Source of the DNA: Macrostomum lignano
Lineage: Eukaryota
Direction: 5' to 3'
DNA: 64,000 nt
NCBI GenBank assembly: GCA_002269645.1
Contig: NIVC01000150.1
Location: 800,781 to 864,780 of the forward strand
This document shows, in pieces, positions 2,221 to 64,000 of the stretch. Below the pieces are notes generated by a model. The model made no database searches. It was not told the origin of the DNA and saw only the letters and a list, made by a program, of their open reading frames with translations. The translations under genes and the position numbers were made by a program. Position 1 is the stretch's first letter. Each line of letters starts with the position of its first letter.

Positions 2221-2662
<442 letters not shown>

Positions 2663-13668: not shown

Positions 13669-13700
13669 ACCTAAATGAACCAACGCAAAACAAAAAAATG

Positions 13701-20320: not shown

Positions 20321-20569
20321 TATATTATGTATATGTAATATATGTATATTATGCGGTGACATTATGACAACCAGGCCAATATTCGATTCTGTGTTGGAAG
20401 TAGCCAAAGTCTGAAAATGTTCGAATTTTCAACTGATTGAAACTTATTCAAACTTAATTTATTTAGTAAGTACCCCAAATGAATGAAAATTGCAAGGGCA
20501 AGACCAACTATTTAATTTTCCGGATTCGGAATGTCGATCAGAGTAAAATAAAAGGGCTAAACACTAAAA

Positions 20570-27732: not shown

Positions 27733-27788
27733 TGTATGAATAACACAGCCTCACTCAGCATCCTCATGTTACATCGCATGCAGTCATC

Positions 27789-28361
27789 ATGAAGGTGATA
27801 AAATCCTCGCTCAGCCTGAAGATCCCTGAGGGTGTCACAGTGACCGCGAACTCGCGCATGGTTCGCGTCAAGGGCAAGCGAGGCGCTCTGTCCCGCTCTT
27901 TCCGCCACCTGTCGCTCGACATCAAAGTGTCTCCGAACGGGCGCACACTGACCGTGGAGAAGTGGTTCGGCGTGCACAAGGAGCTGGCCGCGGTGCGCAC
28001 CGTCATCACCCACGTGCGCAACATGATCAAGGGCGTCACTTACGGCTTCCGCTACAAGATGAAGTCCGTGTACGCCCACTTCCCCATCAACATGGTGATC
28101 AGCAAGGCCGGCGACTCCATCGAGATTCGCAACTTCCTCGGCGAGAAGAACAATCGGACGGTGAACATGCTGCGCGGTGTCACCGTGTCCCAGACTGGCG
28201 TCAAGGACGAGATCCAGCTTGAAGGCAATGATGTCGAGGCCGTCAGCCACGCTGCCGCTCTAATCCAGCAGTGCTGCTGCGTGAAGAACAAGGACATCCG
28301 AAAATTCCTTGATGGCGTCTACGTTAGCGAGAAGACCACCGTGACCGAGGCTGACGATTGA
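27789..28361 (+). CDS. RPL9: 60S ribosomal protein L9 (uL6), CDS without introns
   Basis: FRYKMKSVYAHFPIN, IEIRNFLGEK and VKNKDIRKFLDG motifs; 190 aa; AATAAA ~100 bp downstream. Confidence 0.97.
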   Translation: MKVIKSSLSLKIPEGVTVTANSRMVRVKGKRGALSRSFRHLSLDIKVSPNGRTLTVEKWFGVHKELAAVRTVITHVRNMIKGVTYGFRYKMKSVYAHFPINMVISKAGDSIEIRNFLGEKNNRTVNMLRGVTVSQTGVKDEIQLEGNDVEAVSHAAALIQQCCCVKNKDIRKFLDGVYVSEKTTVTEADD

Positions 28362-28629
28362 ATTGATTGACTCGATTTTCGGATTGCCGGACTGACTGGT
28401 GCCCATCAGGTTGCTAAGGATTTAAGCTTGGCCTATTAGAGCGAGCCTGCTGATTAGCCGATAATAAAATCGTTGGATTAAGAAAAATTGCAATTCTTGA
28501 CTTATGCTTTGGCTTCTTTGTAAACTCCTTGCTTGAACTAATGATGAGCATGTTAAGCATCTGTGGTCGTAAGTTTAAAAAGGATATTGTCTCGTTAATC
28601 TTCGAGTAGCTTCGAGTCCCAGATTAGCG

Positions 28630-28995
28630 AATCTAAGTCCCATCTATACCTGTGAATCTCGGTCCTATACCTATGATTCCCAGTCCTATAACTGTAATTC
28701 CCAGTCCCATACCTGTGATTGCCAGTCCCATACCTGTGATTGCCAGTCCCATACCTGTGATTGCCAGTCCCATACCTGTGATTGCCAGTCCAATACCTGT
28801 GATTGCCAGTCCCATACCTGTGATTCCTAGTCCCATTCCTGTGATTCCCAGTCCCATACCTGTGATTGCCAGTCCCATACCTGTGATTCCCAGTCCCATA
28901 CCTGTGAATCCCAGTCCCATACCTGTGAATCCCAGTCCCATACCTGTGATTCCCAGTACCATACCTGTGAATCCCAGTCCCATACCTGTGATTTA
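28630..28995. repeat. 21-bp minisatellite (CCCATACCTGTGATTGCCAGT)n
   Basis: Direct repeats; source of the 7-aa periodic ORFs. Confidence 0.93.
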
Positions 28996-29018
28996 CATCC
29001 CATCCCAATTGTATTCTC

Positions 29019-31922: not shown

Positions 31923-31954
<32 letters not shown>

Positions 31955-31981
31955 CACAGACAGACAGACAGACAGAAACTA

Positions 31982-32062
<81 letters not shown>

Positions 32063-32651
32063 GGCAGGCAGAGAGACAGACAGACAGACAGACAGACAGG
32101 CAGGCAGGCAGGCAGAGAGACAGACAGACAGACAGCCGCTTCTCTCAACATTCCATTCTTTTAACCGCCAGGTTCTCCTAGGCGACGAGGCCTGCGTCGG
32201 CATGCTGGGCGGCCGGCCCCGCCACTCTGTTTACATATTCGGTTACCAAGGCGACCGGCTGCTATACCTGGACCCGCACGTGTGCGAGCCGGCCAGCGCG
32301 GGCCCCGGCCTGCACTACCGAGCCCGACCAAGGCTGGTGCGCCTGCCCGAGCTGGACCCCAGCTGCGCCCTGGGCTTCCTGCTGCGCTCCTGGCCCGAAG
32401 CCGACAGCTTCCTTCGGCGCGTTGACGTCTGCGCGGCCAGCCCGCAGGATCGAGCAGCGGCAGCCAGCGCCAGCGGATCCTACTCGGCAGCGGCCACCGC
32501 CCTGCCGCTGTTCTCCATCGGTACAGACGCCAGCCAGCGGGAGCACGAGTCCTACACTGAGCTGGAGGAGTCCCTGCTGCGGGTGCACCAGATCAGCTTT
32601 CACAGCGATGGCTACGCCACTCTGTCTACTGACGAATACGTGTTCCTTTGA
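29019..32651 (+). CDS. ATG4: Autophagy cysteine protease ATG4 (C/D-like), exons 29019-29518, 30425-30800, 31622-31813, 32172-32651, ~515 aa
   Basis: YR|KNFEPI across a phase-2 junction; catalytic Cys in DAGWGCM; Asp/His in YLDPH; [10 protein letters not shown]; C-terminal LIR-like DEYVFL*; all junctions GT-AG and in phase; the start codon is less certain. Confidence 0.92.
29650..30335. repeat. 22/45-bp minisatellite in ATG4 intron 1 (AATCGCCCTG core)
   Basis: Alternating AATCGCCCTGAGTGTTTTTCAG and AATCGCCCTGAAAGATTTAAAAA units. Confidence 0.92.
30828..31455. repeat. 21-bp minisatellite in ATG4 intron 2 (ATGGGATTCTGATCCCCTTT[C/G])
   Basis: Direct repeats, each with an internal GGGAT..ATCCC inverted repeat. 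Confidence 0.92.
31846..32135. repeat. (CAGA)n microsatellite in ATG4 intron 3
   Basis: Direct tetranucleotide repeat. Confidence 0.95.
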
Positions 32652-33317
32652 TGTTCGCCTCGTCTGTCCATGCCCTGTCGCATTGATTTTTATCATTCTC
32701 TTAGCATTCTCAGATCTCTTTGCTTAGTTGCTAGTCCACCTTGAAAACTAAATTTATTCACTAATCCTCCCTAGTCCCCAGGATTAACCGCTAATCCCTC
32801 CTTATGTCCAGGACTACGCACGAAACCTTCATTGTCTCCAGGATTAACCGCTAATCCTCCCTAATCCCCAGGATTAACCGCTAATCCTTTCTAATCTCCT
32901 GGACTATTCGCTAATCCTTTTAATTAAATGAATTACCCATAAATCATCCCTAATACTCAGGATTCTTTGCTAATCCTTCCGAATGTCAAGGCTTGGTCAA
33001 CAGCGCTAAAAAATTTATGTTCACACCTGTCTTCTGTCTACAGGTTTCGCATAAAATGGGCTTGTTTTTTTAACCTGCAGGCGCAATTTGTATCAGTTTT
33101 GTTTAAACATGAATTCGAACATTTATTTTTCATTCATCGGATTCCCCCCCTGAGTTCTTGGCATTGTTCTTGTGTTGCTTGTTGGTCTGGGTCTCCATGA
33201 CTCACCGGATTTTTTTCTTGCTTCTGTCAATTTTGCGACTTGCTTTCTGTCGTCAGGGCCATTCATTTTGCTATTAAGTCTGACCTCGATTGGGCCATCT
33301 AAATTTGTTATGAGTAT

Positions 33318-33765
33318 CTTTCATCATCAAAATCTACTGTCTAAAATCTGCCATCATCGAAATCTACCGTCTAAAATCTGCCATCAACAAAATCTACCGT
33401 CTAAAATCTGCCATCAACAAAATCTACCGTCTAAAATCTGCCATCATCAAAATCTACCGTCTAAAATCTGCCATCATCAAAATCTACTGTCTAAAATCTG
33501 CCATCAACAAAATCTACTGGCTAAAATCTGCCATCATCAAAATCTGCTGTCTAAAATCTGCCATCAACAAAATCTACTGGCTAAAATCTGCCATCATCAA
33601 AATCTGCTGTCTAAAATCTGCCATTATCAAAATCTACCGTCTAAAATCTGCCATCAACAAAATCTACTGTCTAAAATCTGCCATCATCAAAATCTACTGT
33701 CTAAAATCTGCCATCATCAAAATCTACCGTCTAAAATCTGCCGTCATCAAAATCTACTGTCTACA
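33318..33765. repeat. 30-bp minisatellite (AAATCTACTGTCTAAAATCTGCCATCATCA)n
   Basis: Direct repeats giving a 10-aa periodic ORF. Confidence 0.93.
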
Positions 33766-34241
33766 AACTGCAGTATTAGAGAAGTTGCCATCTGTAATAT
33801 TTTTGCTATTCACAAAAATGAATATATTTGATTCGATTTCATTCATAGAGTTTGATAATCGCAAATGCTTTGTGTGATTCTCCGCGCATTAAATTCATTC
33901 TTGCTTTGAAGAATCCAACCCACCGTGAGTCTTTCACTTAATGAAAAATACACGAAAAAAGTACTATATAAATTATGAGACTTTGAGCATATTTATTATG
34001 CTAATGTACTTTTGTAATTATGATTATGTACACTCGCTGTATTTCTATTTGCTTCATGTAATATGTGATTAATCGATCTAGTATTTGAAAACAGTTAAAT
34101 ATACATTAGTTGCTATGCGGAACGTAAGATAAGGAATACAAGCAGATTCTGAAAACCATCTTTGTATGGTGTGAAAGAGTTCGTACACAGGTTCCAAAAA
34201 TTTCTTGTTAGTTATTATTAAGTTAAATATTTGCTAGACTA

Positions 34242-34567
34242 GGTTGTAGCCTAGTGGTCAGAGCGTCGGATTCACGACTTAAAGGTCGGGGGTTCGATTC
34301 TCGACCCCACTCGGAACAATTTGTGTCCTTGAGCAAGAGACACTGAACTCTGCATTGCTTCAGTTCGCCCAGCTGTAAAATGGGTGCCAGCATTAGCTGG
34401 GGTAATTGAGGCTGTGTGTGGCGACCCCCCCAGTCCTTGGACTGAACAGCCGTACGCAGCCTTCAGATGCGCCGCGCAATAGCTGCGGCTGAGCTGTCGG
34501 TTGCACATCTGGCCATTAGGGCGGGTGAATCAATTATTGTTATGAATATTATTATTATTATTATTAT
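34242..34567 (+). mobile_element. tRNA-derived SINE with a CORE/V-like central domain
   Basis: A box TAGCCTAGTGG, B box GGTTCGATTC (34291); TGTGTCCTTGAGCAAG...CAGCTGTAAAATGGG resembles the CORE/V-SINE domain; (ATT)n tail. Confidence 0.8.
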
Positions 34568-34587
34568 CAGACTCCATGTTTACAGCT

Positions 34588-34660
34588 CTTACCTGACTTA
34601 GCTGCAGGGTGGTACGTAGACACAGCGGGGAGGCGAGGGTCGCCCATTCCGCTAACCACT
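34588..34660 (-). mobile_element. Very short 3'-end fragment of the same LINE family as 19861-20320
   Basis: GACTTAGCTGCAGGG...CGCCCATT(C/T)CGCTAACC is shared with 19868-19940. Confidence 0.6.
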
Positions 34661-34932
34661 AATCTTAATTACCTCCACTCCAGGCTAAAAATCTTACTAA
34701 CATTTCCGTAAACTACTAACAGTAGCGTTAAGGCAAATCGACCTCAGACCTATGATTCCCGACTACAATTGCTTCGTTAATTAATTAAAAATGTGATCAT
34801 TTTTACGAATTATATAGATTTATTTTTTGTTCATTAAAAATGAGGAATTGTACAGAGGGCGGGTATTATTAATCCTGGTTAATAGGCAATATAATATAGT
34901 TATTATGCAAGTTCACTATGCAATTATACAAA

Positions 34933-35490
34933 TCAGCGAGTTCGCCGGAACTCCTTGACCAGCCGGCTGAGCTCATGCATGGATTCGTAGATGCCGTCGC
35001 CTGTCGTGGCCGTGGCGCCCTGGATGTGCCACTGCCGGCCAGTCAGCTTGTGCAGCCCCAGAGCTCCGGCCAGCTCCGACACGCTGACGGCATGCGGCAG
35101 GTCCTGCTTGTTGGCGACCACCACCACAGGGACTCGGCGCATCTCGTCCGCCTCCAGCACGCCCAGGAGCTCCTGGCGGGCCTCGGCGAATCTCTCGCGA
35201 TCGGCGGAGTCGACGATGAACAGCAGGCCTTCAGAGTTCTGGTAGTAGTGCCGCCACAGGGCGCGGATCCGTTCCTGGCCGCCGACGTCCCAGACGGTGA
35301 AGCTGACGCCTTTGCAGGGCCTGACCTCTTCAACGTTGAAGCCGATTGTGGGAATTGTGGTGACCGTCTCGTTGAGCTTTACCTTGTACAGGATGGTGGT
35401 CTTGCCTGCCGCGTCCAGGCCCAGCATCAGCACCCGGGCCGGCGGGCCGTCGGCGAAATTCTCCAGCAGTTTTGACAGCCAGACGCCCAT
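34933..35490 (-). CDS. ADP-ribosylation factor family small GTPase (ARF/ARL-like), intronless, 185 aa
   Basis: Gly2 myristoylation site, [25 protein letters not shown]. Confidence 0.95.
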
Positions 35491-36661
35491 AACTTCGAAT
35501 TGTAGTTTTTACTGCTTAAAGGCTTAAAAGGCTTGTTAGCTTTGGCGGCTTGTTCTTGCTCCCTTCAAACTTGGGAGGCTGGTCCTATATTTATGCTGTT
35601 CGTGCTCTCTGGGGTTGGCATACTCCTCCAGCACAGTTTCCTCCAACGCGTAACCCGCCATGCCGCTGTGAGCTTTTGCAATATTGCCAGCGTGGAAGAC
35701 TGTGTTAAAGCTTTGGTAATGCTCTGTTGCTAAAAATAGATCTTTCAGACCGCTGCCGGGCTGGCTTCGTCGCTTGAGCTAAAAATAGCCTAGCTCTTGC
35801 CTCCAGAGTGGAAGGGAATTGCCAAAGTGCCACGCTGGATTGCTGGAAGATAACCTCTGATGGGCGCGAACCACTGCATTTCAGATTAACCCAAGGAAAA
35901 AGGGAATTAATTTAAAGATTTTATTGAATTATCTTTATTAGCATTAAATTGCCACTTGATTGCAGAGTTCGAAGATGGAGGAGAGGGTAGATAAGAGAGG
36001 GAGACGGGGGAGAGGGGAGAGAAGTGAGAACAGCAAAGTGTGGATCAGCAGTTTGCCGCATCAGAGAAGAAAATAACAGTAAGCATGCTAATCACGGGTC
36101 TCTGGACCGGTCCTGTTTATCTCGCCTCAAACGGAAAGCGTGCCGCAAAAGACAGGAAAGATTTCTATAGAAATTGGGTGTCGAAAACTGCAATAGCCGT
36201 ACGATTTTCTGCTTGATAAAAAGTCTGTCAAAGAGGAGCCGCGGCAGCGAGGCGCCACTGGACCTGCGGGGCAGAAACTAATGAGAGGACAGACAGTCAA
36301 AGGCGCGTGACCGAGCATGCACCTGCGGCGGTGTCCGGTGAACTCAGGAAGGCTGAGAGAAGTCGCGGTGCCCCTTTTTAGTCGAACAAAAGAAGACGAA
36401 AGGAAGCTTTCCAGTTTCGAATTTCGCTCATTCCCCAGGAGCAGCAGAGGGGAGTAGAGGGATAAAAAGAATGAGCTCGGGCCTCCAAATTGCTTCTCCG
36501 CTGTTCCCAGTCTGTAATTTCCAGTTTGAACTGGTCATATATAAACGCTTTTTTCTCCGAGGCTGGAAAAGTGGAGCCACTCTAGCGCGGACGGCAACCT
36601 TCTATATAATAAGTTGGTTATTTCGCAGATTTGCCAACCTCTTGTGGCAGATGCAGGCGGA

Positions 36662-49346
<12,685 letters not shown>

Positions 49347-50571
49347 CAACTGCGAGTTTTTTCTCTACCCGAGATGCGTGTTTGACGGCTGTAATTTTTC
49401 TGCCCTGGCAGACCACAGGGCTATTGATTGATTGACAAAGCAAAACATTGTTTTTGTTGTGAGTTGGACTTGTTTTCATTAGGTCTCGCACCTAATAAAC
49501 CTTATTAGGTCTCGAACAGCTCAAGTCGAAGGATTCTGCACTCTCTCGCAAATCACAGGAGGACCGGTTCTCGCTGCAAATGCAATAGTTGATTAGGGAT
49601 TTCTTCGTTGTGATGTAACTTTTGACCTTGCACAGTCGCTATGGTTAGTATCCCGAGAAAAAATGATGTTTAAGGCAAAAAAATCAGCCCTGAAGGCCAG
49701 CTATCTAGCCTAAGATATCAGCATCTCCTGTGAGACTTGGAATCAAAGCCTCTTGAGCATTGGCATCTCAGCAATTCCCCTCAGCAAAAGGCAAGCAGGC
49801 GTTTTCTCGATGGGCTATCCATATGATATTCTAGAAACACTACCGAAGACAGGCAGGTCAAGCAATGCTCCCATCAACTGTCTCCATCAACACACGCTTT
49901 ATACTCGTATTTCGCAGGTTTTCAATCATTTTTTATCAAAACTCAACTAGAATAGAACAACTTGTGATGCAGTCCTTTTACTTTAGTTGTCCATAGCGCC
50001 AGTGTTCCATGTTGTTGCTTTTGAAATTACTCTGTAGTTGGCACGCTGCCAAGTAGGGTCAGTACCGCTGCTACACAAGGCTGAGCCTGTTAGATTTGTT
50101 GATAGGAAATTTCCTTGTTTATTAATATAATGAACAAGAAAATTTTTTTATAGAAAGTTTGTCCCCAAGCCGCCGTAAAAAAGCAGGTTTGGAACTGGCT
50201 TCACAACCTCTGGCATGAAGTTGCACATCTGGCATGCTCAGATTTCAATAAAGTTGATTCTACTTATAAACTGACGTTGCTATAGCAACAGTCAGTGCAC
50301 TATTTTCCATTCTGCTTCGAGTTTCTTAGTATTGCTGCACAATGCATTAAAAATTGTTTTTAACTTTTTAACTTTTTGAATTAAAAATTTTATTAACTTT
50401 TCAACAAGAATTAACAAAACTACCGGGCAGATTTTACTCAAATACGTCGTAAAATGACGACGGAGTTATTGTTAGCCATAGTATTGTAAGAAGCAGCACA
50501 ACACACTGAGGTACCAATAATTACTGCTTAGTAGTGAGTTGCGAAAATCATTCGCAAACGAAAGAAATCCC

Positions 50572-53500
50572 TCAGGCCCAGCTGGTCATGCTTGAGTAGC
50601 GCAGAAACAGGCTCTGGTCCTCGAAACTAAGCGGGTCGAACAGCCTGGCGCGAAGGTCGAACAAGTCCAGCTCGGAGAACTGGCCTCGCCAGCTGCCGGT
50701 CTAAAAAATATTTATTCGAACTTTCTTGAACCTTGACGGGGAATTAGGTTGAGAAGATACTCGAACTTTATTTGAAAAAAATTGTAGCACAATTTGATTG
50801 CTTTCGCCAAGGATTCATGCTGTCAAGCAGTCTAGAGATGATGGGAGACGGTGTCAAGGAATCTAGAGATGATGGGAGACGGTGTCAAGGAATCTAGAGA
50901 TGATGGGAGACGGTGTCAAGGAATCTAGAGATGATGGAAGACGGGTCAATAAATCTAGAGATGATGGAGTTTTAGAAGTTTTCCGAATTTCGACTCAACT
51001 TTGAATTTCCTAAAATCCTATATACGCTAGGATTAGACATGTTAACCACCTTCCCATTCCGATAGATCTCTATTGCCGTCTTGCCAGAGTGAGCTTGGCG
51101 CATGTGCTCAAACTCGGTGAGCTGTTGCACCCGTTTCATGAAGGCCTCGTCGAGCCGGCAGCGCTGCTCCGGGGTCAGGAGGAAGCTGGCCAAACTGTCG
51201 ATGGCTCCTCGATGGTCGGCCAGCATGCCCTCGTAAGTGAGGTGCAGCACATTGTCTGGCTGTTGTTTGAGACATCCTTCGTGCCAACCCTTCAAAGTTG
51301 AGAGTTGATGTTGGTGTCGGCAACTTAACTAAAAGCAATGCTTACTTTCCTTTCGGTGAAACCTGGTGTCACACTGTAGTGATCTATTTTTCGGCTATGA
51401 AGTTTCTATCCAGTTTTTAATGCATTACCAACCGATGAACTGCTAAACCTCAGTCTCAGCCATTAGGAAGCAGGACCGTGATGTTCAACGGAAACGTCTC
51501 CACACTAGAAAGACCCTTGTGATTGTATCATCAGGAAAAGTCAGTTGACTCAGTTATTTGGCTCTAATACTGGTACAAGAAATCATAAACAGAGGCACAG
51601 TAGTGAGAGTCCCAAACGTGCATCATAGGTCATTTCAACAGAAAGTCATGCAGTCATACCAAGCGAAGGAAACGAACTCAGAAACCGGTCCTACAACGCA
51701 CGAATCTGACTTTAAGCATTCGTGCGCTACCAAACAGTAATGGCAAACCTTGATGTAATCAAACCAGGAGCCGTTTTGCGAAAGTCCCTTGCAGAATGTG
51801 TCGAGATGGGCCTGCCAGGTGGTGTCGTATCGAGTCAGGTTGTCAGCAGCTCGGGTTCGCTGGTGGTGAAACAACGAAACCGCCACATCGCGGACGTCTC
51901 TGGTGACGAAGATGATCTTTCCTTTCCTGGCGGAGAGGATCTGCTCGGGCAGCTGGCTGAAGTGCAGGTGGGTGTTCATCAGCCTCGGACTGGGCAGATT
52001 CTGCAGCACTTCGCAGTCGACTCTCTCAAGCATGAACTCCTCCTTGGCTTTGGGTGCCTCCGTGCTGCCCTGAATGGTGAGTTCAGTTCAGAGGAGCATC
52101 AGACATGGACAGCTAAAATAGAAGGACACTTTTACCCAGTAAAATTCACACGACACGCGGACCTAGTGCTTACCCTGAGCAGCATGTGAGCTATCTCGTT
52201 CACCCAGTGTGTGCCGGACTTGACGAACGCGCACACCCACACATCTGACTGTCTCGGCCGGAAGCTGTCCCAGTAAGTCTGCAAAGTTGTTTAATCAAAA
52301 AGAATATGCACTACAAAGTCAAGGTCAGTTTTGACTTTTAACAAAATTTGCAAAGCTATGAGTCTTACTGAAATCAATAACTGCAAACCTAAGAGTCTCA
52401 CCCAAAACCCAAGAGTGTCAATCTAAATCCAAGAGTCTCACCCAAAACCCAAGAGCCTCACTCCAAACCTGTGAGTCTGATGGATATCTGTCTCTCCTAC
52501 ATTTAGGCACAATAGCTATCAGAATCACGCTGTCATTGCATGTTCATCTTAGGCCTAAAATCTTAGGCCTAAAACCCTTAATTTGGGACTAAATTGGAAT
52601 CTAGGCTTGGCTCTGCTAGTGCAGTTAACGCCCTTGAAAGCCAAACCCCAATGTACATGCCTAACGATTGTAGTAACTGAGTCAGAGGCCGTGTTTGCTG
52701 TGTAGCCAAACTCTTACAAATCTTGCCGCGCTGGGCACGAGTCTATATATTATGGAGTTAGAATTGGGGTGGCGGCACCCACCCCACTCCGCAGCCAATC
52801 AGACTGCCCGGGCGTACCATACTGTGCGTACGCACACTACATCTCTCCCCTTTCGAATAGAGACTGAGAGAGAAGAAAATCGATTTAAACGTAACTCGAA
52901 AATACAAAGTTCGAAAGATTCACCGATGATGCGCATTGAAAATGGAGATTAAAATATTGAGGAAATAAAATATTTGAATTGAATGCAGCAAAAACGTAAA
53001 AAAACTTCAGTCCGCATATTACGGAAAAGAAAGTCAGTTAATTTCAGTCATTGCAGGATTTCAAATTCAGTCCTTGTAGATTTTCACGCCCGCCCGAGCA
53101 GCGCGGGGGTGCGGGCGCAGCGCCACGGGGGAGGCGGGTGGATCTCGGGCCGCCTCGCCCGAAGCTCTCGGTGCAGCGGTCTGCGTCTGGGCGCCGGCGT
53201 CGGCCAAGTCGGGGCTGACGACTTTGACCGCCGTGCAGTGCCGCCAGCAGGTCGTGCCGTCCCGGCGTAGCAGCAGCGAGTTGCCGGCCACCCGCTGGAC
53301 TGTCCAGGCACCGCTCTCGAATGGCGTCTGCGTCTTGCTGGCACCGACCCGCCGTCGTAGCACCGAGTCGCCGACCTTGACGTCGTGCCGCCGTGGTCGC
53401 CTTTTTGCGTCCGCGTGCTGCTTCATCGCCGCCTTGGCGCCAGCGTCGGCTTCTCTCAGCCGCTGCTCGTTGATGCGGACTCGCTGGGACGGCCGGGCGG

Positions 53501-56500
53501 CGGGGATGATGTCGTTTGGCCGCCGGCCCATCAGCAGCTCGACTGGTGCGCGCCCGGTGGCCGTGTGCGGCGTGTTCCTGTAGGCCAGCAGCCACTCGTC
53601 CAGAGCGGCCCTCCAGTCCCGCCGCTCCTCGATGGCTGCTCGCACGACTTTGTTGATGGAGCGGTTCAGTCGCTCTGTCATGCCGTCTGTCATGCCGGCG
53701 CAGCTGCGGCATCGACTGACGAATTCCTCCGCTTGAGTTGCCATCCTCGGCCACCAGACCTTCGTGCAGAGTCTGGCGATCGTCTTCTGCGAGCACTGGT
53801 GCCCTTGATGCGCTAATTCGAGCATCTGCTGCCGCAGATCAGCTGGCACGACGATTCGGTGGTGTCGAAGGAGGACCCCGTCAACCGCAGACAGCTCCTC
53901 TCGCAGCGCGTGGAGCGAGCGCATCTCGGGGTTGGAGCGATCCCACCGACCGCCTTGCGTCGCCGCTATCGCCGCCCGGATGACTGGGTCGCTGGCAGAG
54001 CTCTTGCGTATGTCTTGGAGTGTCAGCGCCATCGGCACAGCCGCCTGCGCTACCTCGTTGATGTAGGCCTCCCTCCGCTGCTCGCCAAAACTTCCGTCGT
54101 GCTCGCTCAGGGGCTGCCTGCTGAGTACATCTGCAGCATTGGAGGCTCCCGGCTGGTACTCGACCTTGAACACTAGGTGCTGGATCCTCAGCGCCATTCG
54201 CTCGACTCGTGGAGGCGGCCGCGACCCAGGCGCGAACATGGCCGTCAGCGGCTTGTGATCAGAGACCACTGTGAACTGGGGCGATCCATGCAGGTAGTAC
54301 TCAAACTTCAGGCAGCCGAACTTCACGGCGAGTGCCTCTTTCTCGGTCTGCGAATATCGCCGCTCGACATCGGAGAGGGTCCGGCTGGCGTATGCGACCG
54401 GCCTCGAGCTGCCGTCGCGCTGCACCTGCGCCAGGATGGCGCCCAGTCCGGTCGGTCCCGCGTCCACAATCAGCTGCGTGTGTAGCCGCTTGTCGTAAAA
54501 AGCCAGCGTTGTCGGCTCCGCGATGCTGCGCTTCAGCTGCTCAAAGGCGCTGGCCTGGTCGGCGCCCCACTGCCAGTCGACGGTCTTCCTGGTCAGGCGC
54601 CGCAGCGGCTCCGCCACCTTGGCCAGCTGTGGCGTGAACACGGCGAGGTAGTTCACGAGGCCCAGGAATGAGCGAAGCTGCCCAATCGACTCGGGCTCCT
54701 TGAAGTCTTGAACGGCGGCGACCTTGCTCTCCGTGGCCTGGACCCCTTCCGCCGTGAGCCGCATTCCCATGAACTCGATGCTGCTGCGCGCCAGTCGGCA
54801 TTTCCGAGCGTTCAGCGTGATGCCATGCTGCGCCAGGCGGGCCAGACATGCCTCGAGGCTGCTGTTGTGCTCCGCCATCGTGCGGCCGAACACGACCACG
54901 TCGTCGTGGATCCATTTGACGTTGGGCAGGCCTGCCAGCACTCGACTCATCACATTCTGCAGGATCTCCTGGGAGGTGGACAGGCCCATGCACAGCCGGG
55001 TGAGACGGCGAAGCCCGCGAGGCGTCGAGAATGTTAGCAGGTTGCGGCATTTCTCGGCGACAGGCACCTGGTAGAACGCCTTCGCGATGTCCAGCTCTGA
55101 GAACACTGTGCTGCCGGCCATGTCCCCGGTCACCTCCTCGAAAGTCGGAATCTGGTGTCGCTCGCGGATGACAAAGCGGTTGACATCGCGGAGGTCCTGC
55201 GTGATGCGCACCTCGCCCGGCTCCTTCTTGGGCACGACGACCATCCGCGCGACCCACGGCGCCGGGCCGTCGACGGGCTCAATGATCCCGAGCTGCTCTA
55301 ACAACTGCAGTTCCTTGTCCACCGCGTCTGCCAGGTGGATCGGCACCTTCGAAGGCGCATGGCAGACCGGGCGGGCGCTGTCGGTGAGGTGGATGTCGGC
55401 AGGCGGCCCGGTGAAGCAGCCGATTCCGCTGAACACGCTGGCGTGCTTGCGCAGCACCCTGCCGATGTCCTCGACGTGTCCTTGAGGCACTCCGCTGGAT
55501 CTCGTGCCGCTGAGAAGGCCATCGACCGCCGCCTCCGCTTCAGCGACCTGCAGCACCTGCTGTCCGGCTGTCGGTGGTAGCCCGACCCGCAGGATGTCCA
55601 TCTGAGTGGCCGTCTGCCTGCCGATGATGGTGATGCCTCTCCCTTCGACGACGTGGAACGTGGCGACTGCCTGCCGGCCGAAAATGCGGACGTCCATCGC
55701 CGCCTTGCCCAGCAGTTGCATCGGCCTGTCCGACCCGTACGCGAACAGCCTGTCCGAGGTGGTCTGCAGGTGCGGCCGCTGTCTCAGGCTCTCGAACGTG
55801 GCCCGGTTGATCACATTTCGAGCCGCACCGCTGTCAATCAACACCGACAGTCTGGAGCCGTTGATCTCGGCTATTGTGTGGGCCGACTGCTCACCCTGAT
55901 CGACCTCGAACACGCCGGAGTCCGGGTGGTCCACCTTCTGGTAGCTGGTCTCGCCTTGCAGCGTTGCGACGGCGTCGGCGCCGCTCTGCGGGGCGCCCTG
56001 CTTGGACCTGCAGGCTCGCGCGAAGTGGCCCGGCTTCCCGCACTTTCTGCAGCTCTTGCCCTGCGCTGCGGTGCACGTGGGGTGCCCTGGCCTGCCGCAG
56101 CGATCGCACGATACGTGCTGCGTTGGTGTCTGCGGCATCTGTGGCTTCTGGTCTCTTCTGACCGCTGCGAGCTGCTGCGGTTCCCCTGGTCTGTCGCTCT
56201 CCATCGCGGTGGCCTGCTGCTCCGCGGCTTCTTTCGCCCTCGCCTTTTTGAGCACATCTGCCAGGGAGATATTGTTGGTCTGCAAGAAGTCTCTCCTGAG
56301 TCTCTCAGATTCGCAGTAGGCGACGATTTTGTCACGGATCAGCGAGTCTCTGAGGGTCCCGAACTCACACAGCTCCGCCGTCTTGCGCAGACGCTGATAC
56401 CACTGGTCGATCTGCTCGCCAGGCTGCTGTCTGCAGGTCTCAAACTTGAAACGCAGGAACACAATGTTATTCTTCCCGTCCCAGAACGTCTGGATGTTTT

Positions 56501-57400
56501 TCGCGAGGCTGCTGTAGTCCTCTCCAGAGGCGATCTCGTTCTCTTCGACTACAGCCTGCAGCTCCTCTCCTGCGGCGTACAGCAGCAGCTGCTGCCCTCG
56601 AGTCTTGTCGGTGATTCCAGCTGCATTGATGTACGTGGCGAAGCGACGAGTCCATGCAGTCCAGCGCTGTGCTGTGGAGTGGCAGTCGCTATCGATTGTA
56701 AACGGCCCGGGTGGCGCGAGTGAAATTTGCTGAGTCATGATTTTTAAAGGTTCAGTTCTTGCGACGCCATTGTAGTAACTGAGTCAGAGGCCGTGTTTGC
56801 TGTGTAGCCAAACTCTTACAAATCTTGCCGCGCTGGGCACGAGTCTATATATTATGGAGTTAGAATTGGGGTGGCGGCACCCACCCCACTCCGCAGCCAA
56901 TCAGACTGCCCGGGCGTACCATACTGTGCGTACGCACACTACAACGATAAATAAAGTTAGGGCCGCTGTGCACTCCTGTGTGAGTGTGTGCCTGTGCGTA
57001 TGACTGCGTACGTATCCGCGCGCTTGTGTGCCTGCTCAGGGGAGTCGGCGGAATGGGCAGTAATGCCTCTCGCCGGTTGTGTGATAATGTCGCTTAAAGT
57101 GCGCCAGGTTGTGTACATCCATCCTGTCTATGATAAAATGTGTCCTATAAAATACGGTACACGACACGCCATTTTCACTAGGCTGGGGGCAGACGACGCG
57201 GCATGTTGGCATCAATCTGAAAAACATTCGGTTACCTGCAGGCGCCTCTTTACTCCGGGAAAAGGGCACACGGGAACGCCGCGAAACAGCACGAACCGGT
57301 ATTCCACGCCAGCAATGTCTAGCAGAGAAGACAGTTCTCTTCGGTGCCGCTCCCTCTCGCCCGGGCTATTGTAGGCGCTCTTCTTTGACAGCGACGACAT
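50572..57400 (-). CDS. Cytosolic sulfotransferase (SULT1-like fold), 319 aa; exons 57400-57236, 52278-52174, 52069-51749, 51289-51050, 50700-50572
   Basis: 5'-PSB FVKSGTHW, catalytic His in NTHL, 3'-PB RDVRDVAVS, C-terminal RNGK|TGSW; all junctions are phase-0 GT-AG; total 960 nt. Confidence 0.9.
50830..50972. repeat. 31-bp minisatellite in sulfotransferase intron 4
   Basis: TCTAGAGATGATGGGAGACGGTGTCAAGGAA, ~4 copies. Confidence 0.9.
52669..56943 (-). mobile_element. Ty3/Gypsy LTR retrotransposon, 4275 bp, within sulfotransferase intron 1
   Basis: 173-bp LTRs at 52669-52841 and 56771-56943 (TGTAGT...ACTACA), identical by eye; TSD ACGAT; PBS-like TGGCGTCGC at 56769 downward; PPT AGGGGAGAGA at 52851-52842. 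Confidence 0.97.
53067..56738 (-). CDS. Gag-Pol polyprotein, 1223 aa, with an internally deleted integrase
   Basis: Zinc knuckle CRKCGKPGHFARAC, protease LIDSGA, RT (ELDIAKAFYQ, IHDD), RNase H (VDAGPTGLGA, EKEALA, DHKPL), integrase HHCC followed almost directly by ERLNR. Confidence 0.95.
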   Translation of the reverse strand: MTQQISLAPPGPFTIDSDCHSTAQRWTAWTRRFATYINAAGITDKTRGQQLLLYAAGEELQAVVEENEIASGEDYSSLAKNIQTFWDGKNNIVFLRFKFETCRQQPGEQIDQWYQRLRKTAELCEFGTLRDSLIRDKIVAYCESERLRRDFLQTNNISLADVLKKARAKEAAEQQATAMESDRPGEPQQLAAVRRDQKPQMPQTPTQHVSCDRCGRPGHPTCTAAQGKSCRKCGKPGHFARACRSKQGAPQSGADAVATLQGETSYQKVDHPDSGVFEVDQGEQSAHTIAEINGSRLSVLIDSGAARNVINRATFESLRQRPHLQTTSDRLFAYGSDRPMQLLGKAAMDVRIFGRQAVATFHVVEGRGITIIGRQTATQMDILRVGLPPTAGQQVLQVAEAEAAVDGLLSGTRSSGVPQGHVEDIGRVLRKHASVFSGIGCFTGPPADIHLTDSARPVCHAPSKVPIHLADAVDKELQLLEQLGIIEPVDGPAPWVARMVVVPKKEPGEVRITQDLRDVNRFVIRERHQIPTFEEVTGDMAGSTVFSELDIAKAFYQVPVAEKCRNLLTFSTPRGLRRLTRLCMGLSTSQEILQNVMSRVLAGLPNVKWIHDDVVVFGRTMAEHNSSLEACLARLAQHGITLNARKCRLARSSIEFMGMRLTAEGVQATESKVAAVQDFKEPESIGQLRSFLGLVNYLAVFTPQLAKVAEPLRRLTRKTVDWQWGADQASAFEQLKRSIAEPTTLAFYDKRLHTQLIVDAGPTGLGAILAQVQRDGSSRPVAYASRTLSDVERRYSQTEKEALAVKFGCLKFEYYLHGSPQFTVVSDHKPLTAMFAPGSRPPPRVERMALRIQHLVFKVEYQPGASNAADVLSRQPLSEHDGSFGEQRREAYINEVAQAAVPMALTLQDIRKSSASDPVIRAAIAATQGGRWDRSNPEMRSLHALREELSAVDGVLLRHHRIVVPADLRQQMLELAHQGHQCSQKTIARLCTKVWWPRMATQAEEFVSRCRSCAGMTDGMTERLNRSINKVVRAAIEERRDWRAALDEWLLAYRNTPHTATGRAPVELLMGRRPNDIIPAARPSQRVRINEQRLREADAGAKAAMKQHADAKRRPRRHDVKVGDSVLRRRVGASKTQTPFESGAWTVQRVAGNSLLLRRDGTTCWRHCTAVKVVSPDLADAGAQTQTAAPRASGEAARDPPASPVALRPHPRAARAGVKIYKD

Positions 57401-58802
57401 GAGGACTGAGAAGCAAAAGAAGAGTTTGCCAAGAATACTGGATTCGCTCAGCACTTGGCTAATTATATATCGCAGTCAAATTCCAGCGCCGATAAGCGCC
57501 ACACGAACTGGTCATTGCGCAAAATCTGTCAGCATAAATTGGCCGGCTTTCGACTTATAGATAGTAAGCACAGCAGCACCGGCTTCTGTTGATAGCAGTT
57601 CGTTGATAAGCCTGAAAGTCACTTTGAAGGCGGAATCTCAACTTTGAACCAACTTTGCCAGTCTGTCGTATTAATTAAAGTAGTCCTCCGGCACGAACGG
57701 AAATGTTTGAATTTAGACTGATTTTTAAGTCACCCAATTAAATTACCGCTAAAACTTATAATTATTGATTAGTTAACTTTTATGCACCTGTACTCAATAG
57801 ATTATTTCTGTGGCGTTAAACCTATATTTGCAGCTATGCCCACCAGCACCAGACCATTAGATCAATCAAGCTGGTCCGCTGGTTTCAATGCATTATCTAC
57901 ATTGTTTTTAACTAAAAATTTTCAATCTATTAGCTAAGATTGCTTTCACAATATGCAAAAAAGCAACCATAAAATTATTATTTTCTTTATTATCAATAAT
58001 TTTTTATTACTAGTGAGGGAAAATAGCTGTTATAGGAAAATCTGCTGTGTATTTCGTCTATAAAAAAAGATACTTTATAGTGCCTTTTTAAAAATATACA
58101 GCTACTTTGTAGTTAAAACAAAATTTGCCCTAATGGGTACGTGTTAATAATTTTAGAAATTTAGAAATGTAAACTCTTATTAGATGGGTAGCTACTCAGT
58201 ATAGTGAGTAATAAATATGGTGTGTTAGAATTCTACTGTTTCTGAATGACAGAAAAAATATCTAATTGATCATGGCCAGGTCGCCATAGAAGCGCAGCTT
58301 CAGGCGCTTTTTTACGGAGTAACTTCAGATGGGCGTGAGCCGTTTGAGCAAAGCTTAGATTTCGTAAATTCAAGAATGCAAGTCATTTTTCCCTTTGACA
58401 TAAAACCCTTTTAAAATTAAAAATAGTTTCTTAACTTTACACCTTCAATTACTTTTGTTCAAACGGCCGAAACAACATTATAAGCGAAGCGCTGCTTCTC
58501 AGCTGTTGAATCACAAGATGGTCTCAAGAAACTCGTTTTTACGAGACCTCGTAGACCTCGGAAATAAATATCGAATTCATTTCCGCGCTGTGATGCACAC
58601 TATCAGGTATTGAGCACTCGGAACCCCGGTAAAAATCATTAGCGGATCAAATAAGTTGAATCTAATAAGTTATAGAACTTTCGGAATAATCTACTTCTAC
58701 TAGCTAGCGTAGGTTAGAAGGGTAAGAAGCAACTACTGTACGAACGGGTTCATCATTGTTTCAGTCCATTAAAAAACGGGCCCACGTCTCCAGCACAGGT
58801 GT

Positions 58803-61800
58803 CTAGTCTGACAGGTTCAGCATGCGACCCTCCAGGGTGGAGAGTCGAGTAATGCCGCTGTTACTTTCGCCTACGCTCACCATGGAGGCCAGGGCTGCCT
58901 GCACACTGCCATCAGAGCCGTCGATTCCAGAGACCGATCGGTAAACGCTGGACAGGCCGTCCCCAGACACTGCGAAGCCTCGCGAACCGGAGCTGACCGT
59001 CTCAGACATATTGACGATGCCGCTGCCGCTGCTCTGCGTCACGATCCTTTCACCTGAACGGCCTGACGACTGCCGCTGAATAGCAGACGTACCGCTTGCA
59101 GAACTGATCACACCGGACAGGTCGGAAACATCGGCATGTGCACCAGAAAAATTATTAAATTCTATTTGTCTCTGGACTGATGGAAGCCTGGTGGCGAACG
59201 AACTGGACAGGTCCAACATTTCTCCTTCTGATCCGCCAATGCTGACTACACTTGATCTAGGATCTCCAGATGCAACTCCCTGGATACCACCAGGAACCGA
59301 TTCTGTTCGTGAGCCAAATGACGTAAACTCGTTGCTTCCATTAATCCTCACGACTCCAGATGTTCCGGATGACTGTCTCTGGATAGTCGAGATCCTGCTG
59401 GTGTTCGTATCAGAAAGGTCTAACATCCCACCGCTAGATCCACCAATGTTGACAACACCAGATCCATAGACACGAGACGCACTCGACTGCGACTCAAACG
59501 ACCTGCTCTGAATGAGATTGGCGCTTCTGGATGACGCCGTCGCGAATCCGACTTCCCCTCCTTCGCCAACTTGCGTTGCAACGTTTCGAAATTCGCGAAG
59601 TAACATGTACTCGCGAGCGAAAGCTTCGACTCCGAAATACGAAACTATGAAGGAGAGGTTGACGTCAACGCGACCGTTCTTCAATACAAACATGTTCCAC
59701 AATGCGGACTTGTAGTTCAAATCAGTCTGCGCCTCGGAGGTCCTGGTCGCCCTACTGGCAGAACTGCTCTGACCGACGCTTAGTGCATATCTAAAATGCA
59801 AAATCTCGCGTGTTGTGAGGAACGTTCGGAAACGAAAAAGAAACTTAGAATTGAAGTATTCAATAGGAACCCATAATCCACGAAACTTACATGCTGCTAC
59901 TGTGCTGCTGCTGAACTTGTCTTTCGTCAACGCGACTTTCTGAAATGAGTTCAGCAGTCGATCCAACGAACTCGCAGCCCGAATCAACGATTGGCATGCT
60001 TCGTATGACTGGCATCGAAGGCGGTGTGCTTATTTTTAACTCTTCAACAGCGACTCGCTCGTTGAACGTTCCGGATGCCGTAGTTGGCAGTTGGAAGAGA
60101 AATCTTGCAGACGATGTGCTCCTCTGAATTTCCTTGAAACATCCACTTGAAGCCATCTCAGACTTAGAGGATTCTTCATGGAAGCAACCAGAAGCAGAAA
60201 CTTTTGTTGAAACATCAGTAAATTTGACGACCGAAGATGAGAAAGAGGACTCACTAAAGAATCCAGAGGCAGCGACTGTCACATTTGCGGTCGCTGTCAC
60301 CGACGAATTATCAAATGAAAGCTCTTTAAGGCAGCCCGACGCAGTTACATCGACTTTTGGCACAAATATAGCAGCAGAGTTTTGGTAAGATGATTGCTTG
60401 AAACAGCCGCTTGCGGTAAGCGTTGGCGCCGGTAAGATGAACTTTGCGCTACTGGCTTGGTAACTTGTCTCGTAGTAGCAGCCGGAGTTGTCATATTTCG
60501 GCCTCCAATCGCACGTCACGGAAGCCGGCTCGAGCGTGATTTGCTTGAAACAGCCGCTTGCGGTAAGCGTTGGCGCCGGTAAGATGAACTTTGCGCTACT
60601 GGCTTGGTAACTTGTCTCGTAGTAGCAGCCGGAGTTGTCATATTTCGGCCTCCAATCGCACGTCACGGAAGCCGGCTCGAGCGTGATTTGCTTGAAACAG
60701 CCGCTTGCGGTAAGCGTTGGCGCCGGTAAGATGAACTTTGCGCTACTGGCTTGGTAACTTGTCTCGTAGTAGCAGCCGGAGTTGTCATATTTCGGCCTCC
60801 AATCGCACGTCACGGAAGCCGGCTCGAGCGTGATTTGCTTGAAACAGCCGCTTGCGGTAAGCGTTGGCGCCGGTAAGATGAACTTTGCGCTACTGGCTTG
60901 GTAACTTGTCTCGTAGTAGCAGCCGAGTTGTCATATTTCGGCCTCCAATCGCACGTCACGAAGAAGCCGGCTCGAGCGTGATTTGCTTGAAACAGCCGCT
61001 TGCGGTAAGCGTTGGCGCCGGTAAGATGAACTTTGCGCTACTGGCTTGGTAACTTGTCTCGTAGTAGCAGCCGGAGTTGTCATATTTCGGCCTCCAATCG
61101 CACGTCACGGAAGCCGGCTCGAGCGTGATTTGCTTGAAACAGCCGCTTGCGGTAAGCGTTGGCGCCGGTAAGATGAACTTTGCGCTACTGGCTTGGTAAC
61201 TTGTCTCGTAGTAGCAGCCGGAGTTGTCATATTTCGGCCTCCAATCGCACGTCACGGAAGCCGGCTCGAGCGTGATTTGCTTGAAACAGCCGCTTGCGGT
61301 AAGCGTTGGCGCCGGTAAGATGAACTTTGCGCTACTGGCTTGGTAACTTGTCTCGTAGTAGCAGCCGGAGTTGTCATATTTCGGCCTCCAATCGCACGTC
61401 ACGGAAGCCGGCTCGAGCGTGATTTGCTTGAAACAGCCGCTTGCGTAAGCGTTGGCGCCGGTAAGATGAACTTTGCGCTACTGGCTTGGTAACTTGTCTC
61501 GTAGTAGCAGCCGGAGTTGTCATATTTCGGCCTCCAATCGCACGTCACGGAAGCCGGCTCGAGCGTGATTTGCTTGAAACAGCCGCTTGCGTAAGCGTTG
61601 GCGCCGGTAAGATGAACTTTGCGCTACTGGCTTGGTAACTTGTCTCGTAGTAGCAGCCGGAGTTGTCATATTTCGGCCTCCAATCGCACGTCACGGAAGC
61701 CGGCTCGAGCGTGATTTGCTTGAAACAGCCGCTTGCGGTAAGCGTTGGCGCCGGTAAGATGAACTTTGCGCTACTGGCTTGGTAACTTGTCTCGTAGTAG

Positions 61801-64000
61801 CAGCCGGAGTTGTCATATTTCGGCCTCCAATCGCACGTCACGGAAGCCGGCTCGAGCGTGATTTGCTTGAAACAGCCGCTTGCGGTAAGCGTTGGCGCCG
61901 GTAAGATGAACTTTGCGCTACTGGCTTGGTAACTTGTCTCGTAGTAGCAGCCGGAGTTGTCATATTTCGGCCTCCAATCGCACGTCACGGAAGCCGGCTC
62001 GAGCGTGATTTGCTTGAAACAGCCGCTTGCGTAAGCGTTGGCGCCGGTAAGATGAACTTTGCGCTACTGGCTTGGTAACTTGTCTCGTAGTAGCAGCCGG
62101 AGTTGTCATATTTCGGCCTCCAATCGCACGTCACGGAAGCCGGCTCGAGCGTGATTTGCTTGAAACAGCCGCTTGCAGTAAGCGTTGGCGCCGGTAAGAT
62201 GAACTTTGCGCTACTGGCTTGGTAACTTGTCTCGTAGTAGCAGCCGAGTTGTCATATTTCGGCCTCCAATCGCACGTCACGAAGCCGGCTCGAGCGTGAT
62301 TTGCTTGAAACAGCCGCTTGCGGTAAGCGTTGGCGCCGGTAAGATGAACTTTGCGCTACTGGCTTGGTAACTTGTCTCGTAGTAGCAGCCGGAGTTGTCA
62401 TATTTCGGCCTCCAATCGCACGTCACGGAAGCCGGCTCGAGCGTGATTTGCTTGAAACAGCCGCTTGCGGTAAGCGTTGGCGCCGGTAAGATGAACTTTG
62501 CGCTACTGGCTTGGTAACTTGTCTCGTAGTAGCAGCCGAGTTGTCATATTTCGGCCTCCAATCGCACGTCACGGAAGCCGGCTCGAGCGTGATTTGCTTG
62601 AAACAGCCGCTTGCGTAAGCGTTGGCGCCGGTAAGATGAACTTTGCGCTACTGGCTTGGTAACTTGTCTCGTAGTAGCAGCCGGAGTTGTCATATTTCGG
62701 CCTCCAATCGCACGTCACGGAAGCCGGCTCGAGCGTGATTTGCTTGAAACAGCCGCTTGCGGTAAGCGTTGGCGCCGGTAAGATGAACTTTGCGCTACTG
62801 GCTTGGTAACTTGTCTCGTAGTAGCAGCCGGAGTTGTCATATTTCGGCCTCCGCAATCGCACGTCACGGAAGCCGGCTCGAGCGTGATTTGCTTGAAACA
62901 GCCGCTTGCAGTAAGCGTTGGCGCCGGTAAGATGAACTTTGCGCTACTGGCTTGGTAACTTGTCTCGTAGTAGCAGCCGGAGTTGTCATATTTCGGCCTC
63001 CAATCGCACGTCACGGAAGCCGGCTCGAGCGTGATTTGCTTGAAACAGCCGCTTGCAGTAAGCGTTGGCGCCGGTAAGATGAACTTTGCGCTACTGGCTT
63101 GGTAACTTGTCTCGTAGTAGGCAGCCGGAGTTGTCATATTTCGGCCTCCAATCGCACGTCACGGAAGCCGGCTCGAGCGTGATTTGCTTGAAACAGCCGC
63201 TTGCAGTAAGCGTTGGCGCCGGTAAGATGAACTTTGCGCTACTGGCTTGGTAACTTGTCTCGTAGTAGCAGCCGGAGTTGTCATATTTCGGCTCCAATCG
63301 CACGTCACGGAAGCCGGCTCGAGCGTGATTTGCTTGAAACAGCCGCTTGCGTAAGCGTTGGCGCCGGTAAGATGAACTTTGCGCTACTGGCTTGGTAACT
63401 TGTCTCGTAGTAGCAGCCGGAGTTGTCATATTTCGGCCTCCAATCGCACGTCACGGAAGCCGGCTCGAGCGTGATTTGCTTGAAACAGCCGCTTGCGTAA
63501 GCGTTGGCGCCGGTAAGATGAACTTTGCGCTACTGGCTTGGTAACTTGTCTCGTAGTAGCAGCCGGAGTTGTCATATTTCGGCCTCCAATCGCACGTCAC
63601 GGAAGCCGGCTCGAGCGTGATTTGCTTGAAACAGCCGCTTGCAGTAAGCGTTGGCGCCGGTAAGATGAACTTTGCGCTACTGGCTTGGTAACTTGTCTCG
63701 TAGTAGCAGCCGGAGTTGTCATATTTCGGCCTCCAATCGCACGTCACGGAAGCCGGCTCGAGCGTGATTTGCTTGAAACAGCCGCTTGCAGTAAGCGTTG
63801 GCGCCGGTAAGATGAACTTTGCGCTACTGGCTTGGTAACTTGTCTCGTAGTAGCAGCCGGAGTTGTCATATTTCGGCCTCCAATCGCACGTCACGGAAGC
63901 CGGCTCGAGCGTGATTTGCTTGAAACAGCCGCTTGCGTAAGCGTTGGCGCCGGTAAGATGAACTTTGCGCTACTGGCTTGGTAACTTGTCTCGTAGTAGC
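58803..64000 (-). CDS. 3' part of a giant tandem-repeat protein (exon from beyond 64000 to 59891; exon 59790-58803); unknown family
   Basis: Phase-2 GTAAGT donor at 59890 and phase-2 TTTTAG acceptor at 59791 join the 308-aa and 394-aa ORFs; the repeat grades in frame into degenerate unique copies; single-base indels interrupt the array. Confidence 0.65.
60390..64000 (-). repeat. 147-bp coding tandem repeat, >=24 copies, 49-aa unit TCDWRPKYDNSGCYYETSYQASSAKFILPAPTLTASGCFKQITLEPASV
   Basis: Period is 147 bp (e.g. TTGCGGTAAG at 60411 and 60558), a multiple of 3, open on the minus strand. Confidence 0.95.

Follow-up and report, generated by a model that had tools for sequence, protein, structure and literature searches.

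A giant repeat-bearing gene of Macrostomum lignano with a predicted plakin-type N-terminus

The DNA considered here is a 64,000-nucleotide stretch of the Macrostomum lignano genome (hereafter the window; NCBI GenBank assembly GCA_002269645.1, contig NIVC01000150.1, positions 800,781 to 864,780 of the forward strand), whose end contains the 3′ third of a giant minus-strand gene, here gene B, built around a 147-bp tandem repeat. Versions of this gene are also found on two other contigs of the same assembly, NIVC01000773.1 (L001) and NIVC01000460.1 (L002), reached via the contigs of two public proteins, P0001 (UniRef A0A1I8GPT7) and P0002 (PAA76993.1, BOX15_Mlig010347g1), and it is in L001 and L002, outside the window, that the N-terminal part of the protein was read. 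Within the window, the gene comprises the following features:

60394..64000, minus strand: tandem array of 147-bp (49-codon) units within one giant exon, from Tandem Repeats Finder (TRF) and unit-by-unit alignment
59891..60393, minus strand: 3′ end of the giant exon, with about six diverged single modules and then a unique linker to ...QQQHSSS; 0 indels against L001
59890..59791, minus strand: 100-bp GT..AG intron in phase 2, GTAAGT...TTTTAG, read directly
58803..59790, minus strand: last coding exon, 329 codons including a split Ile codon, with a TAG stop at 58803-58805
59577..59729, minus strand: conserved C-terminal module of about 50 residues, QTDLNYKSALWNMFVLKNGRVDVNLSFIVSYFGVEAFAREYMLLREFRNVA, from BLASTP to protein P0004 (33% identity, E=5e-8)
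58806..59486, minus strand: Ser/Gly-rich region of about three diverged 69-residue units (..FGSRTE..VNIGGSxGEMLDLS..), from BLASTP to the exon tail of the neighboring paralogue, gene A

The array is made of 24.6 copies of the unit with 99% matches (TRF), a lower bound that is fixed by the window edge at 64000, off which the array runs. The consensus unit has the minus-strand translation PKYDNSGCYYETSYQASSAKFILPAPTLTASGCFKQITLEPASVTCDWR, with three Cys per unit, and is open in one of the six frames only, the other five holding 1-4 stops per unit; it corresponds to a pair of modules of about 24 residues with a G-x-[FY]-x-E core. Among the 23 complete units, a single substitution recurs; it exchanges C and T in the third position of a Thr codon (ACC/ACT), and as both codons encode Thr, this variant is synonymous. 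A prediction previously made from the letters of the window alone (the original prediction) had proposed at least 24 near-identical 49-residue repeats, each encoded by 147 bp and composed of two halves of about 24 residues with three Cys, as well as a synonymous ACC/ACT change, all of which is borne out by our analysis, with 58 units at the locus as a whole. Indeed, the version of the window locus on L002 holds 58.2 units and the copy on L001 holds 44.1; at three Cys per 49 residues, the array contains about 170 Cys in total. The C/T variants are blocked along the array (14 runs in L002, p=0.0005; p=0.007 in the window). Unequal exchange or gene conversion keeps the array uniform, and it is because of this homogenization that copy number differs between gene copies (58 vs. 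44). The option of a window array starting just past 64000 and counting about 27 units, drawn from the public model P0016, is ruled out by the 58 units of L002.

On one point the original prediction has to be amended: it missed the frameshifts of the array. The window array is in fact without a single continuous frame, as it carries about 15 small indels, of 1-2 bp per affected unit, in 13 of the 23 complete units, which unit-by-unit alignment measures at 145, 146, 148, 149, or 150 bp when they bear an indel. Inside the array, the longest open reading frames (ORFs) are of 147-148 residues, and the longest in-frame run is the ORF at 59887..60813 (308 residues), which covers three consensus units and the tail. 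Taken at face value, these 15 or so indels and the lack of a long ORF across the window array might reflect a decaying pseudogene with real frameshifts, a reading that we nonetheless hold to be very improbable. For the most part, a single base is deleted from CC or GG, and seven indels fall exactly at the C/T site, when substitutions between units are essentially nil apart from that same site; many indels, almost no substitutions, and a clustering in CC/GG and at the C/T site are the signature of long-read consensus error rather than of evolutionary decay. Furthermore, L002 aligns to the window along 2,248 bp of unique sequence with 0 mismatches and 10 single-base gaps, which identifies it as the same locus, and several of these 10 gaps throw L002 out of frame at points where the window is intact. 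Within the L002 array, 55 of the 57 unit spacings are exactly 147 bp, and the frameshifts that it does have differ in position from those of the window, whose unique coding sequence is itself intact. Since two assembled versions of one locus differ by scattered one-base indels only, the frameshifts of the window are technical errors of assembly. ORFs of 1,568 and 1,140 residues run through the L002 array, and one of 1,582 residues in L001 spans 29 units and the tail. At the boundary between array and unique sequence (60386..60396 in the window, 43407..43415 in L002), we also observed two compensating one-base indels, the reading being FKQSSYQN in the window and L001 and FKQIIYQN in L002.

The frame is moreover kept by modules that lie on both sides of the array. 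Downstream, the ORF at 59887..60813 continues in frame through VTASGCLKE, AASGFFSE, SASGCFHE, ASSGCFKE, and TASGTFNE, as already noticed in the original prediction, and upstream, the same ORF in L001 and L002 includes the diverged modules NVTASGCHAS, VVSSGCHKE, KSAGCFIEK, SHGAFKERT, and TGSGCYSEW. The proposal that the periodicity of the protein is older than the homogenization of the DNA is strengthened by these flanking modules and by the presence of the module of about 24 residues in paralogues. Together, the single open frame, the exclusively synonymous variant, the diverged in-frame modules on both sides, and the long ORFs indicate that the array is, by all appearances, protein-coding. 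It could still be asked whether a noncoding satellite might mimic a coding sequence in this way, because the window is saturated with minisatellites and an open unit whose length is a multiple of 3 propagates its own frame. However, such a satellite would have to account for modules that stay in frame on both flanks despite their divergence, for a module that recurs in paralogues at 30% identity, for flanking exons that have homologues, and for array variation that is synonymous only, which makes it extremely improbable.

With regard to constraint, 1,911 nt of unique coding sequence differ between the window locus and L001 by 20 substitutions and 0 indels, and their unique sequence diverges by 1.3% substitutions; the 100-bp intron has four substitutions against L001, a higher rate than that of the exons with about 1%, and 12 gaps open in the alignment of the 3′ flank. 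When the window-versus-L001 unique coding sequence is pooled with the pre-array part of the exon compared between L002 and L001 (2,913 nt), 10 synonymous and 14 non-synonymous changes give a ratio of non-synonymous to synonymous change (pN/pS) of 0.41 (one-sided binomial p=0.03), a weak signal that may reflect purifying selection on the gene.

The 3′ end of the gene was recovered as the original prediction had drawn it, with a 100-bp phase-2 intron leading to a Ser/Gly-rich C-terminal exon. Around 59890..59791, the giant exon ends in ...AGCAGCAT, the intron follows, and the last exon opens with ATATGC... An in-frame TAA overlaps the donor, so that the unspliced upstream frame stops there; since, in addition, the downstream exon has homologues and P0001 carries the identical splice junction (...HSSSIYALSVGQ...), the intron is supported. 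The spliced translation runs in frame to ...LEGRMLNLSD and the stop. The last exon, which gave no Pfam match, is homologous to the C-terminus of gene A (E=8e-32 over 219 residues, extreme C-terminal motif included), its Ser/Gly-rich region aligning with the gene A tail at 37-44% identity over 133-219 residues (BLASTP, E=1e-30 to 8e-32). In gene A, the 69-residue unit forms 207-bp arrays, both in L001 and in L002, where it is present 17-24 times against about three diverged copies in the last exon of gene B. As for the module at 59577..59729, its match P0004 is a C-terminal fragment of a distant paralogue. We also note that about 60 residues of the Ser/Gly-rich region (window 59210..59420) are absent from P0001, between VVNIGGSS and VSIGGSDGEMLDLS; this gap amounts to roughly one repeat of the 69-residue type and may represent either copy-number variation or a modeling artefact.

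The N-terminus had been placed beyond the window by the original prediction, and the upstream exons read in L001 and L002 encode an N-terminal domain of about 450-470 residues with a plakin-type SH3. The N-terminal models match Pfam SH3_10 at 41 bits (cut-off 22.8), and residues 126-315 match plakin-domain structures with phmmer (plectin 3pe0, 3e-8; desmoplakin 3r6n, 6e-8). AlphaFold2 folds the first 473 residues, at a predicted local distance difference test (pLDDT) of 66, into long helical repeats interrupted by a small beta domain, and a Foldseek search of the PDB with this model retrieved desmoplakin SR3-SR6 (3r6n, 5e-9, 443 aligned columns) and plectin SR4-SR5-SH3 (3pe0, 5e-7). Sequence and predicted fold thus concur in assigning the N-terminus to a plakin domain, made of spectrin repeats with an embedded SH3. 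The statement that the protein matches no family accordingly survives for the repeat, which has neither a Pfam nor a PDB match, and falls for the protein as a whole, given SH3_10, plectin, and desmoplakin.

The first exon of gene B opens with MSFMLAAHQQEVEKWLQDN... or MSFMLAAHQQEVEKW... and leads straight into helical repeat sequence. No signal-peptide-like or transmembrane-like stretch was found in gene B or in any family member, the Kyte-Doolittle mean of every 19-residue stretch being <=1.25 and the N-terminus not being hydrophobic. A plakin-type N-terminus without signal peptide or membrane segment leads us to predict that the protein is cytoplasmic and not secreted. This bears directly on the original suggestion of a secreted or adhesive product, for which one could invoke the known adhesive proteins of the same species, Mlig-ap1 and Mlig-ap2, likewise very large, repetitive, and Cys-rich (PMC6410801). 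Yet these proteins are secreted from adhesive glands and combine Lys/Arg-rich regions with vWD, TSP-1, EGF, C-type lectin, and LDL domains (PMC6410801), when Pfam found none of their extracellular domains in gene B (vWD, TSP-1, EGF, or C-type lectin included); between this difference of architecture and the cytoplasmic-type N-terminus, we give very little credence to a secreted adhesive or an extracellular matrix protein, and that part of the original prediction is not supported.

Put together, the protein would comprise about 4,000-4,300 residues, a figure that is an estimate, as no public model crosses the array; the giant, repeat-built structural protein initially proposed is supported. For the L002 copy, which would reach roughly 4,200 residues, the parts are an N-terminal domain of about 450 residues, about 410 before the array, 2,850 in the array, about 170 after it, and 329 in the last exon. 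The deduced order would run from the plakin domain to one 83-residue helical module, which precedes the array in both L001 and L002, and the diverged modules of about 24 residues, then to the 49-residue array, a second set of diverged modules, the 100-bp intron, the module of about 50 residues, and a Ser/Gly/Arg-rich tail that would consist of repeats of the 69-residue type. The NCBI models P0002 and P0016 are chimeric, with exon 1 of gene A followed by later exons of gene B (L001 10001..33123 and L002 10001..35644), and both stop in the repeat at the first frameshift (...TKPVAQSSS... and ...QAAVSSKSRSSRLP), their truncation being due to single-base assembly errors in the repeats.

Protein searches place gene B within a family of its own in M. 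lignano. The spliced product matched solely M. lignano proteins, P0001 and P0002, and P0001, run through a full HMMER scan against 1.84 billion representative proteins, returned only M. lignano relatives and one spurious prokaryotic repeat protein (P0005); word-indexed searches with the paralogue P0003 and with an N-terminal alignment (A2) yielded no relatives outside M. lignano. L001 is a second copy of the gene, either a paralogue or a homeologue. Directly upstream of gene B lies, in tandem, its paralogue gene A (L001 10001..19925, L002 ~10001..20805), which shares the plakin-type N-terminal exons with gene B and has a single exon of 2,089 residues where the 83-residue helical module occurs about nine times and the 69-residue Ser/Gly-rich unit 17 times in L001 and 24 times in L002. 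Further matches to the 83-residue module were seen at L001 4637..5738.

More distant paralogues share parts of this architecture. P0003, P0004, and P0008 have the plakin N-terminus and the G-x-[FY]-x-E module, P0004 having the C-terminal module as well, and a motif scan recovered the short module about every 24 residues in most relatives. P0003 and P0004 (Mlig024865) end in pure 24-residue repeats, VTGSGCFRETSYNESRVRFKEEIA, and P0008 and P0010 (Mlig017584) are built of 57/103-residue units with GAMGAFDE and EMGSCEQ; older copies of the module read SSGVFRE, STGVYRE, and ATGTFIE. For this comparison the motif scan proved better than an iterative hidden Markov model, which at 24 residues is too insensitive and retrieves the closest copies only. 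Each paralogue has thus amplified a different module, of 24 residues, of 57/103 residues, of 83 and 69 residues, or, here, of 49 residues. Across paralogues, the core that is retained is G-x-[FY]-x-E after small residues (alignment A3), and Cys is not conserved there (SGVF, MGAF, TGTF), which argues against Cys chemistry as a defining property of the module family. The label of SGC repeat under which the array was first described hence captures the periodicity and over-emphasizes the Cys. In public annotation the gene already figures under hypothetical proteins or proteins with automatic names, and our literature search found no paper that joins Macrostomum with plakin, plectin, or desmoplakin, or that names the gene identifiers.

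What the module itself resembles was looked for with several tools. The repeat and C-terminal protein has no Pfam match (E<=10) and no PDB sequence match; plakin repeats (Plectin repeat, PF00681) are not matched at E<=10 here, nor at E<=0.1 in the paralogues, and the best hit of a profile of 22 modules was an unrelated protein at E=1.7, in a PDB that includes plakin-repeat structures. Pfam spectrin was not matched in the middle region, for which no dedicated coiled-coil prediction was run. Likewise, an N-terminal calponin-homology domain, EF-hands, and GAS2/GAR were not found, SH3_10 being the only domain that Pfam sees in the N-terminal models. An AlphaFold2 model of 307 residues of repeats from a four-row alignment has a mean pLDDT of 32 and a predicted template modeling score (pTM) of 0.27, and at such low confidence it was not used for fold search; its short strands, its lack of helices, and the alternation of polar and hydrophobic residues are hints of possible beta-hairpins in the module, not evidence for them. 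The model speaks neither for nor against the beta-solenoid or metal-binding scaffold that the original prediction had raised. Hits of VQ, DUF4853, Microp_apicomplexa_17, and others in the repeats of paralogues or gene A were rejected as repeat-summed noise, as no single stretch was significant. The automatic UniProt name of P0001, Fibronectin type-III domain-containing protein, is also without Pfam support, since fn3 had no Pfam match at E<=10 and no PDB match for the equivalent window protein.

The plakin-type N-terminal domain, the one part of the protein that is recognizable as a known domain, docks plectin, desmoplakin, and relatives to junctional or membrane complexes. Gene B resembles desmoplakin and plectin by this domain, with its spectrin repeats and embedded SH3 in sequence and predicted fold alike, and by its layout, in which a docking domain is followed by a long middle and a repeat-bearing Ser/Gly/Arg-rich C-terminus; as in desmoplakin, there is no calponin-homology domain. 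It departs from both in being devoid of plakin repeats (PF00681), and no coiled-coil or spectrin rod was recognized in its middle, which is an array of the G-x-[FY]-x-E module of about 24 residues; its tail is like glycine-serine-arginine (GSR) tails in composition alone. Epiplakin and Drosophila Short stop are plakin-family members that share with gene B one very large exon with a long series of repeats, and the final repeats of human epiplakin hardly differ from one another, down to the DNA level. For Short stop, a large exon of shot encoding plakin repeats is described in PMC2173965. These are however bona fide 38-residue plakin repeats in plakin repeat domains (PRDs), whereas the module of gene B is unrelated in sequence, shorter, and more uniform (58 copies, 99%). 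Unlike spectraplakins (MACF1, dystonin, Shot, and VAB-10), gene B shows no calponin-homology actin-binding domain, EF-hands, or GAS2/GAR. Further parallels lie in M. lignano itself, where the paralogues BOX15_Mlig024865 (PAA91320.1), Mlig017584, Mlig031564, and gene A share the plakin domain at 35-86% identity, together with a helical YV/YIEEN motif and the module of about 24 residues and/or the C-terminal modules.

Because of the plakin N-terminal domain and of this parallel in overall layout, we favor, with a probability of about 0.6, the reading of gene B as an intracellular structural linker or scaffold, that is, a lineage-specific plakin-like cytolinker. By analogy, the protein would be anchored through its plakin domain to a junction or a membrane-associated complex. 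Its long repeats would form an extended rod or spacer, or else present filaments with a multivalent binding surface, and the Ser/Gly-rich tail would contact cytoskeletal filaments or regulate the binding to them; the role as a cytolinker, what the protein binds, and how the module folds are inferred here. Several points weigh against this proposal. Repeat and tail are without detectable similarity to plakin repeats, coiled-coil/spectrin rods, or GAR domains, AlphaFold yields no confident fold for the repeats, and three Cys per unit are unusual for a cytoplasmic rod. Moreover, the full-length protein was assembled from public gene models that are partial and never cross the array, the NCBI models join gene A exon 1 to gene B, and the weak signal of selection comes from 24 substitutions in all.

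The abundance of Cys in the array, with about 170 residues at three per unit, also invites a different use of the same architecture, in which the Cys-rich array would be the cross-linkable material of a specialized hard or stiff intracellular structure, such as the fiber core of anchor cells, the stylet, or the sperm bristles, instead of linking junctions to filaments in general. That the family was found in M. lignano only, with rapid, paralogue-specific amplification, would fit such a role, and there is a precedent for cell-type-specific cytoskeleton in this species, e.g., the anchor-cell intermediate filament (PMC4016567). However, Cys is not retained at the module core in the paralogues, and no paper ties a plakin-like gene to those structures, so that we regard this alternative as rather unlikely, albeit not negligible. 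More speculatively still, the module of about 24 residues might be a new cytoskeletal repeat that has replaced plakin-repeat and rod regions in a Macrostomum-specific radiation of plakin-domain proteins, whose paralogues, each with a homogenized array of its own, would build or anchor different specialized structures inside cells (fiber core of anchor cells, stylet, sperm bristles) and where cross-linking through Cys would stiffen the 49-residue version; we hold this reading to be unlikely.

If the architecture of gene B is right, it would represent a plakin-type cytolinker in which an unrelated short module, in about 58 near-identical copies, has taken the place of the rod or filament-binding part, and thereby a natural experiment on the evolution of giant linkers by module amplification and on the coupling of plakin domains to other parts. 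Giant repetitive genes are unsurprising in a minisatellite-rich genome; it is the module, its paralogue-specific amplification, and the tractability of the species that add to the worth of this one. As a matter of fact, RNA interference, in situ hybridization, and transgenesis all work in M. lignano, which makes the function testable. A practical consequence is that single-base consensus errors leave public M. lignano gene models cut short or chimeric at repeat arrays.

Beyond gene B, the window displays an extreme density of minisatellites (57 TRF rows over 1..58000), among them a 20-bp unit repeated 77 times at 1..1543, a 13-bp unit 80 times at 3204..4229, a 20-bp unit 151 times at 5299..8426, a 56-bp unit 15 times at 26882..27733, and a 44-bp unit 22 times at 40820..41799, and its first 10 kb show strong strand-composition skews. 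Apparently intron-free ORFs encode a cytochrome P450 (17694..19310, plus strand, E=2e-102), a ribosomal protein of the L6/uL6 family (27789..28361, plus strand), and an Arf-family GTPase (34933..35490, minus strand, E=2e-63). Traces of mobile elements include a helix-turn-helix fragment at 45647..46270 (minus strand), which resembles a transposase N-terminus, and an ORF of 1,223 residues at 53067..56738 (minus strand) with reverse transcriptase, RNase H, and integrase zinc-binding domains, i.e., the gag-pol of a long terminal repeat (LTR) retrotransposon. The similarity between the window and L001 stops at 56943, adjoining this gag-pol element, which may therefore be a copy-specific insertion. 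On L001, finally, gene B has a 2.7-kb intron just ahead of its giant exon, and this intron contains helix-turn-helix ORFs of DDE-type-transposase-like character at 28956..30067.

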